Source: Schmidtea nova
Lineage: Eukaryota
Direction: 5' to 3'
DNA length: 64,000 nucleotides
Assembly (NCBI GenBank): GCA_044892505.1
Contig: CM097883.1
Coordinates: 390,290,001-390,354,000 of the forward strand
Part shown: one piece after another, positions 21,281 to 62,429 of the stretch
Layout of the letters: the number at the start of each line of letters is the position of its first letter
How positions within the stretch are numbered: the first letter of the stretch is position 1
The notes under the pieces: model-generated
Told to the model about the DNA's origin: nothing
Databases searched by the model: none
What the model saw: the letters and a program-made list of their open reading frames with translations, nothing else
Position numbers and translations under genes: made by a program

Positions 21281-21371
21281 ATGAATGAATACTGCGTTTT
21301 TTTAATGATTGTCGTTATAATTTCAACATTCCATTATTCAAATTCTTCATCATGCTTGAATAATAATAAAG
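21281..21371 (+). CDS. VKR-like exon 1 (signal peptide)
   Basis: [31 protein letters not shown]|GTAAAG; hydrophobic core; phase-1 end matches the phase-1 start of the exon at 29939. Confidence 0.7.

Positions 21372-62429: not shown

Follow-up and report, generated by a model that had tools for sequence, protein, structure and literature searches.

A probable Venus kinase receptor gene of a planarian, its pre-kinase exons spread over 41 kb

The locus described here is very probably, to judge from its sequence, the 5′ part of a planarian Venus kinase receptor (VKR) gene, stretched to 41 kb by the transposons that fill its introns. One open frame with consistent splice logic runs through 13 exons of the window (the whole stretch of 64,000 nucleotides that was analysed), the encoded domains follow one another in the order found in VKRs, and the protein belongs to the flatworm VKR clade. 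Its product would start with a signal peptide, followed by a two-lobed N-terminal domain of the OpuAC/ProX solute-binding fold (exons 2–5) and a Venus flytrap of the GABA-B type (exons 6–12) that keeps the ligand-pocket residues of VKRs; exon 13 would add a short PPGDGS…C stalk, a single transmembrane (TM) helix and a juxtamembrane motif conserved in flatworm VKRs. The phase-0 donor of exon 13 would join the first exon of an insulin-receptor-like tyrosine kinase, as in relatives; the gene is presumably expressed, and its kinase exons would lie downstream of base 64000. By analogy with VKRs that have been studied experimentally, a small ligand would close the flytrap of a dimer and so turn the kinase on.

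In schistosomes, VKRs govern the development of gametes and larvae; to our knowledge vertebrates have none, and for these two reasons VKRs are candidate drug targets. Flatworm members described so far include SmVKR1 and SmVKR2 of Schistosoma mansoni, CsVKR1 and CsVKR2 of Clonorchis sinensis, and VKRs of tapeworms (PMC3703292). In 2013 no unequivocal VKR was found in a planarian genome (PMC3703292), and a review of 2014 only states that planarians have VKRs (PMC4026697). With the exons of the ligand-binding half worked out, a planarian VKR can be approached by RNAi and in situ work, in a relative of the parasitic flatworms that lends itself to experiment. The model also gives an idea of the flatworm ancestor of VKR1 and VKR2, for instance through an N-terminal segment that it keeps and flukes have lost.

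Thirteen exons and their joins

Exon coordinates were derived anew from homology and splice sites: relatives were run on the window by tblastn, profiles built from relatives were run against 1561 window ORFs, and the exons so marked were joined from the window sequence in a local script. The rebuilt chain occupies 21281..62429 of the + strand and comprises 13 exons; their 2586 nt make 862 codons, none of them a stop and none read as X. All 12 introns run from GT to AG (24 of 24 splice dinucleotides are canonical), and phases agree at every join. The independent rebuild reproduces exactly the figures of an earlier note on this DNA, which had described 13 GT-AG exons forming one stop-free frame of 862 codons with matching phases. 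At the stop frequency of the local introns (0.073 per codon), some 63 stops would be expected by chance in a chain of this length; none is observed.

Ten of the 13 exons have profile support of their own (E 1e-31 to 5e-7, among 1561 window ORFs); exons 1, 4 and 12, which lack a significant profile match of their own, are supported by phase, splice sites and motif-level alignment. Matches on the + strand are collinear, at 29.9–30.4, 34.0–34.3, 40.8, 43.2, 46.5, 46.7, 51.6, 51.9 and 62.2 kb; a further match, at 59.2 kb, is weak.

Exon 1 (21281..21371; this and all later exons are on the + strand) has a start codon, a hydrophobic signal-like segment and a conserved Cys, aligns with the N-termini of homologues, and ends in phase 1 at the donor AAG|gtaaag. 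The N-terminal domain follows. Its first part lies in exon 2 (29939..30137; profile E 6e-9 to 2.5e-12), which is matched in tblastn by tick, nemertean and fluke VKRs and has a 45-nt intron downstream; its most conserved stretch is exon 3 (30183..30366; profile E 9e-10 to 6e-15), 48% identical to the tick VKR in an alignment here called A1. Exon 4 (32088..32247), found through its motif and bounded by splice sites, reads ESIDHWKVF… and carries the DHW(K/R)xF motif of non-fluke VKRs; this motif occurs once in the window in all six frames, and at the same place in six VKR homologues. Across the join of exons 3 and 4, DHW follows G(W/I)F at a distance of 17 residues, exactly as in the tick and nemertean VKRs, and the score of the model against the tick VKR rises from 219 to 235 bits once exon 4 is added. 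Exon 5 (33887..34272; profile E 4e-18, tblastn E 5e-14) ends the domain.

Exon 6 (40766..40937; profile E 4e-14) supplies a linker (IACNWL…W) and the first strand of the flytrap, and is 52–55% identical to fluke VKRs. Exon 7 (43159..43326), marked by its profile (E 2e-7) and splice sites, belongs to lobe I and contains the conserved Cys of NLSC. Exon 8 (46488..46641; profile E 5e-15; Pfam ANF_receptor E 2e-3, below threshold) contains AAVCSDS, with the S66 position, and YFYRTIPS, with R107-T108-I109; a 47-nt intron separates it from exon 9 (46689..46854; profile E 3e-11), which has the W128 position in KWKRISIL. The joined sequence of exons 8 and 9 aligns without gaps to GABA-B R1, and it aligns to VKRs as well. 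Exon 10 (51595..51872) gives the strongest profile match (E 1e-31; Pfam ANF_receptor E 3e-5, below threshold); it runs CAAYKLGM…DNCT, includes the VKR motif GY(V/I)WFLPxWL, and is followed by an intron of 51 nt. The chain returns to lobe I in exon 11 (51924..52073; profile E 5e-7 to 9e-9). Exon 12 (59158..59363), the end of the flytrap with SPLLKWYF…, has a weak profile match in the right order (E 0.29) and a tblastn match with relative P0001 (E 0.08); its 206 nt, leading from phase 2 to phase 1, are required by phase. It is without some 8–11 residues of a G-x-S-G flytrap strand present in other VKRs. Exon 13 (62158..62429; profile E 5e-14 to 1e-18) codes for the PPGDGS…C stalk, followed by the only TM helix and by the juxtamembrane motif, and ends in phase 0 at the donor GAT|gtaagt.

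The motifs quoted in the earlier note are all where they should be: AVCS and YFYRTIP in exon 8, NCT in exon 10, the TM helix and ELADLD in exon 13. Its remark that the ORF track shows scattered fragments is also apt: from 21 to 62.5 kb, the listing for the + strand has nothing but short open pieces amid transposase ORFs, and several of these pieces carry the quoted motifs.

The 12 introns measure, in order, 8567, 45, 1721, 1639, 6493, 2221, 3161, 47, 4740, 51, 7084 and 2794 nt. Three are micro-introns: 30138–30182 (45 nt), 46642–46688 (47 nt) and 51873–51923 (51 nt). Their removal restores frames that are otherwise broken, by in-frame stops or by changes of frame. Two of the three conceal an in-frame stop, and the exons around them look broken in the ORF listing; introns of 45–51 nt and of 1.6–8.6 kb coexist in this one gene.

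Six runs of N interrupt the window: one in intron 3 (30579–31442), two in intron 5 (35918–36105 and 37602–38009) and three in intron 11 (52296–52462, 52976–53159 and 57197–57393). Every run is more than 200 nt from the nearest splice site, and the reading frame crosses none of them. Exons flanking each assembly gap are in the correct order and on the correct strand, and alignments to homologues are continuous across the joins of exons 3 and 4, 5 and 6, and 11 and 12, that is, over all three gapped introns. No residues are lacking from the alignment at these junctions, and the gaps appear to conceal no coding exon. The window is rich in AT, its GC content being 15–36% per 2 kb. Long AT-only runs of low complexity and microsatellites of (TA)n or (ATATAC)-like type, at 53234–53586 and 57608–58065, flank the gaps of intron 11 and are probably the reason that the assembly breaks there.

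Several other chains and boundaries were tried and set aside. A first chain of 12 exons and 805 codons was 57 codons short, and was replaced when the exon at 32088–32247 and the acceptor at 33887 were recognised. A 171-nt open piece between AG and GT (33291–33461, +) was rejected as an extra exon: no homologue has an equivalent, and a mariner element occupies the opposite strand. By chance, this decoy fits the phase between exons 3 and 5, and its length equals the 57-codon gap of the 12-exon model. Candidate extra exons between exons 11 and 12 (58372–58485, 58689–58760 and 52153–52245) have no usable acceptor or contain stops; the homologue alignment passes straight from …EEVAK, in exon 11, into exon 12. 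Alternative boundaries at 46494 (exon 8), 46704 or 46723 (exon 9), 59315 (exon 12) and 33898 or 33937 (exon 5) were rejected on the alignment, or on an intron of less than 30 nt.

The receptor family and the boundary with the kinase

With the exon 10 ORF as query, a full HMMER search of 1.84 billion proteins (E ≤ 1e-3) returned 97 relatives. The best are 44–51% identical, many are 1000–1600 residues long, and the closest are flatworm proteins. Sixteen long relatives, which come from flukes, tapeworms, monogeneans, a nemertean, a tick and a beetle, were scanned with Pfam; 14 of them have ANF_receptor followed by PK_Tyr_Ser-Thr, the kinase match in the complete ones being E 1e-72 to 1e-89. One of them (P0010) is GAA49307.1, published as CsVKR2 in the VKR family paper. 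Checked for best matches outside the VKR group, the 16 long relatives prove to be mostly proteins joining a flytrap to a tyrosine kinase, CsVKR2 among them.

The joined model scores 393 bits against a VKR of Calicophoron (in a local script), and matches the tick VKR as one single domain over residues 8–716. Identity is 31–35% to fluke VKRs and 22–25% to arthropod and nemertean VKRs. The hallmarks of the family are C35, S66, R107-T108-I109, W128 and GY(V/I)WFLPxWL (PMC3703292), and the model keeps all those checked: C35 (NLSC), S66 (AAVCSDS), R107-T108-I109 (YFYRTIPS), W128 (KWKRISIL) and the GY(V/I)WFLPxWL motif. A quick maximum-likelihood tree, whose columns took in the kinase that is absent from the window protein, places the protein inside the flatworm VKR clade with SH-aLRT 100, at the unresolved base of that clade and outside both fluke paralogue groups. 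The earlier note had called the receptor a VKR, and a strongly divergent one. The name holds, in that best matches, flytrap hallmarks, one TM helix and tree all favour a VKR, of which the window holds the pre-kinase part. The adjective is too strong, because an identity of 31–35% to fluke VKRs, with the hallmark residues kept, falls within the range of 24–44% reported between fluke and tapeworm flytraps (PMC3703292). The sequence comparisons support a basal flatworm member of the known family, not an unusually divergent one.

Set beside other flatworm VKRs, a comparison that covers the pre-kinase exons of the window gene, the model shares the order of the ectodomain, the flytrap hallmarks, the single TM helix, the juxtamembrane motif RR-K-L…PYEELCAELADLD, the exon boundary just before the kinase, and a many-exon layout over tens of kilobases (15–18 exons and 19–48 kb in the others). 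It differs from them in its basal position, having branched off before fluke VKR1 and VKR2 parted, and in its three micro-introns of 45–51 nt; unlike fluke flytraps, it has no long low-complexity inserts. With arthropod and nemertean VKRs (P0095 of Ornithodoros, P0046 of Rhynchophorus and P0055 of Tubulanus) it is collinear over residues 8–716, and shares the succession of N-terminal domain, flytrap and TM helix and the ending L-(D/A)-x-(W/L)-(E/D) before the kinase; what sets it apart from these is the identity of 22–25% and a juxtamembrane motif of flatworm type.

One region of the 862-residue model exceeds 1.6 on the Kyte-Doolittle scale in a 19-residue window: residues 809–835, encoded by 62268..62348 (+), with a maximum of 2.82 and followed by RRLRK. 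This single helix and the hallmark alignment bear out the description of the protein as a GABA-B-like Venus flytrap followed by one TM segment. The likeness to GABA-B receptors invites a second reading, in which the protein is a class C GPCR, the helix of exon 13 is its TM1, and six more helices lie downstream. Indeed, the exon 10 ORF matches the flytraps of GABA-B R1 and R2 in the PDB (E ~1e-3); the elements CS…, FxRTxPS, W-x-(K/R)-I, VWFL and NCT occur in the same order and spacing as in those structures (PDB 4mqe and others), and automatic annotation has named several homologues "GABA type B receptor subunit 2". The resemblance ends at the flytrap: the model has an extra N-terminal domain, a single-pass topology and no 7TM domain to be seen. 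The + strand frames of the 1.57 kb after exon 13 contain no further hydrophobic helix, so that the check for more TM segments past exon 13, to the end of the window, came out negative; Pfam finds no 7TM family in any of 22 homologues, and a tyrosine kinase in most of the long ones. Moreover, the sequence past the helix equals the VKR juxtamembrane motif residue for residue, and the tree places the protein inside the VKRs. The post-helix sequence is also unlike the short first intracellular loop of GABA-B receptors. The GPCR reading is highly improbable and close to refuted.

A third reading makes the protein a receptor guanylyl cyclase, in which an ANF-receptor ectodomain and one TM helix would be followed by a kinase-homology domain and a cyclase. 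An ectodomain of ANF_receptor type ahead of a single TM helix would suit this architecture, and one homologue, the tick protein P0095, is automatically named "atrial natriuretic peptide receptor 2-like". Yet P0095 itself, like all the others, has PK_Tyr_Ser-Thr (E 1e-72 to 1e-89) and no cyclase family, and the flytrap is of the GABA-B/VKR type with VKR motifs. As the Pfam scan found no guanylyl cyclase family in any of the 22 homologues, a cyclase in place of the tyrosine kinase is even less probable than a GPCR, and close to excluded.

For the VKR reading, the decisive place is the end of exon 13. The 1571 bases between it and the window end (base 64000) contain no exon of the kinase, the half that defines the family. 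The sequence after the helix matches YRRKLKE.E…RKP(F/Y)EELCAELAD(L/I)D of fluke VKRs, and in four relatives (P0006, P0010, P0012 and P0013) the residue that aligns with the last D of exon 13 precedes the Pfam kinase domain by 7 residues. A kinase beginning directly after ELADLD, as the earlier note predicted, is thus the arrangement seen in all relatives. The contig that carries the closest relative, P0001, which stands among flukes in the tree, has ELKDID|gtaaat, an intron of 590 nt, and then ILSSDIVLNRRIGQGAFGMVYGG; its kinase exon opens with ILSSDIVLNRRIGQGAFG, a GQGAFG kinase exon, and HRDIACRN…DFG is found further on. Its D-I-D|gt boundary is the same exon boundary as that of exon 13, and the intron before the kinase is common to this contig and the flatworm gene of the window. 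Kinase exons beyond base 64000, spliced on at the end of exon 13, are by this analogy a well-founded prediction. In the same contig (1084–4460), the equivalents of exons 10–13 form one uninterrupted exon of 437 codons; the planarian gene thus has at least three introns that the contig lacks.

The main rival to an intact VKR gene is a derivative without a kinase, or a young pseudogene, in which the exons up to the juxtamembrane motif survive but those of the kinase have been lost or separated; it would give a truncated decoy receptor ending …ELADLDVSF, or no product. The window does lack a kinase, and read-through of the exon 13 donor meets a stop after three codons (…DLDVSF*). Neither a transcript nor a predicted protein of the gene was found, the latter in a collection of 15 billion proteins; the gene lies among many transposon insertions, and a small deletion sets exon 12 apart from its counterparts in other VKRs. 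A search with a 5.7-kb, mostly intronic stretch returned four sequencing runs, all of one study and none of RNA; their DNA-like contigs, which are collinear with the introns, contain no exon-exon joint. The lack of RNA evidence, however, reflects an absence of data for the species, not silence of the gene. Against this rival stand the 0 stops in 862 codons, where some 63 would be expected, the 24 of 24 canonical splice dinucleotides, a phase-0 donor, GAT|gtaagt, exactly where relatives splice to the kinase, and a conserved juxtamembrane motif, which is relevant only to an intracellular partner. Among four DNA samples, 41 variants are listed for 46400–52100, none of them in exons 8–11 and one in intron 10; this hints at constraint, weakly, since 52 further variant places exist in the interval beyond the 41 listed. 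A derivative or pseudogene is on balance unlikely, though it deserves more weight than either of the other two rivals.

The domain ahead of the flytrap

Exons 2–5 have homologues in tick, beetle, nemertean and flatworm VKRs (among them P0095:25–400, P0055 and P0046), where the corresponding region, about 350 residues, stands ahead of the flytrap. An AlphaFold2 model of residues 25–400 of the tick protein, made from the 21-row alignment A1 that includes window exons 2–5, has a pLDDT of 87.4 and a pTM of 0.85. Among the best 50 Foldseek matches of this model in the PDB, TmoX comes first, then OpuAC, ProX, OpuBC, ChoX, EgtU and other binding proteins of this sort, together with sensor-precursor proteins, at E 7e-15 to 1e-5 and with a TM-score of up to 0.71 on the target; superposition on TmoX, OpuAC and ProX gives E 7e-15 to 1e-12 and TM-scores of 0.66–0.71, again on the target. 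By sequence, the family profile also finds TmoX in the PDB (E 3e-8), and the (L/A)W(L)P and WTP(N/H) motifs fall in register. The Pfam OpuAC family reaches 18–20 bits in two homologues, against a cut-off of 21.2, and does not match exon 5. The Trp of INLELW and that of DWYPN align with a Trp in the OpuAC/TmoX motifs; these may be residues of an aromatic ligand cage.

The region is predicted with high confidence to adopt the two-lobed class F solute-binding fold of OpuAC, ProX and TmoX. The fold of the tick model superposes on these components of bacterial ABC transporters; it differs from them in its setting, an animal receptor ectodomain, ahead of a flytrap. The founding VKR paper describes a VKR as the association of two domains, flytrap and kinase, and a search of the accessible literature found no paper joining VKRs with the OpuAC fold or with glycine betaine, although the connection may be noted elsewhere. 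The OpuAC-like region is probably a third VKR domain, so far undescribed.

In bacteria, the OpuAC/ProX/TmoX fold binds quaternary-ammonium compounds. One could imagine VKRs, this gene included, as two-sensor receptors, in which a second solute-binding domain has its own ligand and helps to control the kinase; from the structural model this is a tentative proposal, rather doubtful as it stands. If it were so, the ligand of the N-terminal domain may be betaine, choline, a TMAO-like compound or some other cation. The conserved OpuAC-like domain suggests a second ligand site in a receptor family whose natural ligands are still poorly defined, and the N-terminal domain may matter more to the field than the gene itself.

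The DHW(K/R)xF segment of exon 4 is shared by the planarian, the tick, the nemertean and some other relatives. The window gene keeps it, whereas none of the fluke and tapeworm VKRs examined does, which suggests that the N-terminal domain became shorter in the parasites.

Mobile elements in the introns

The earlier note had spoken of a transposon graveyard, a fair description: introns 1, 4 and 5 contain transposase ORFs or their remnants. Intron 1 has a fragment of a Merlin/IS1595-type transposase (22668..23204, +; Pfam DDE_Tnp_IS1595 E 1.6e-9). Intron 4 has a decayed mariner/Tc1-like element on the − strand (32541..33415), in which HTH_24 is above its cut-off and DDE_3, Transposase_1 and HTH_32 are sub-threshold. 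Two intact Merlin/IS1595-type transposase ORFs of 298 codons, at 36440–37336 (+) and 39461–40357 (−), match DDE_Tnp_IS1595 at E 4e-17 and 8e-16; they lie in intron 5, nearly identical and facing each other. Upstream of the gene, two ORFs on the − strand look by eye like a remnant of a Pif1/Helitron-type helicase (14203–14679) and of another mobile element (8752–9150). In intron 9, two stretches (49456–49646 and 50793–51556) have a contig word depth hundreds to thousands of times that of their flanks in all four DNA runs; they belong to very high-copy repeats of the genome.
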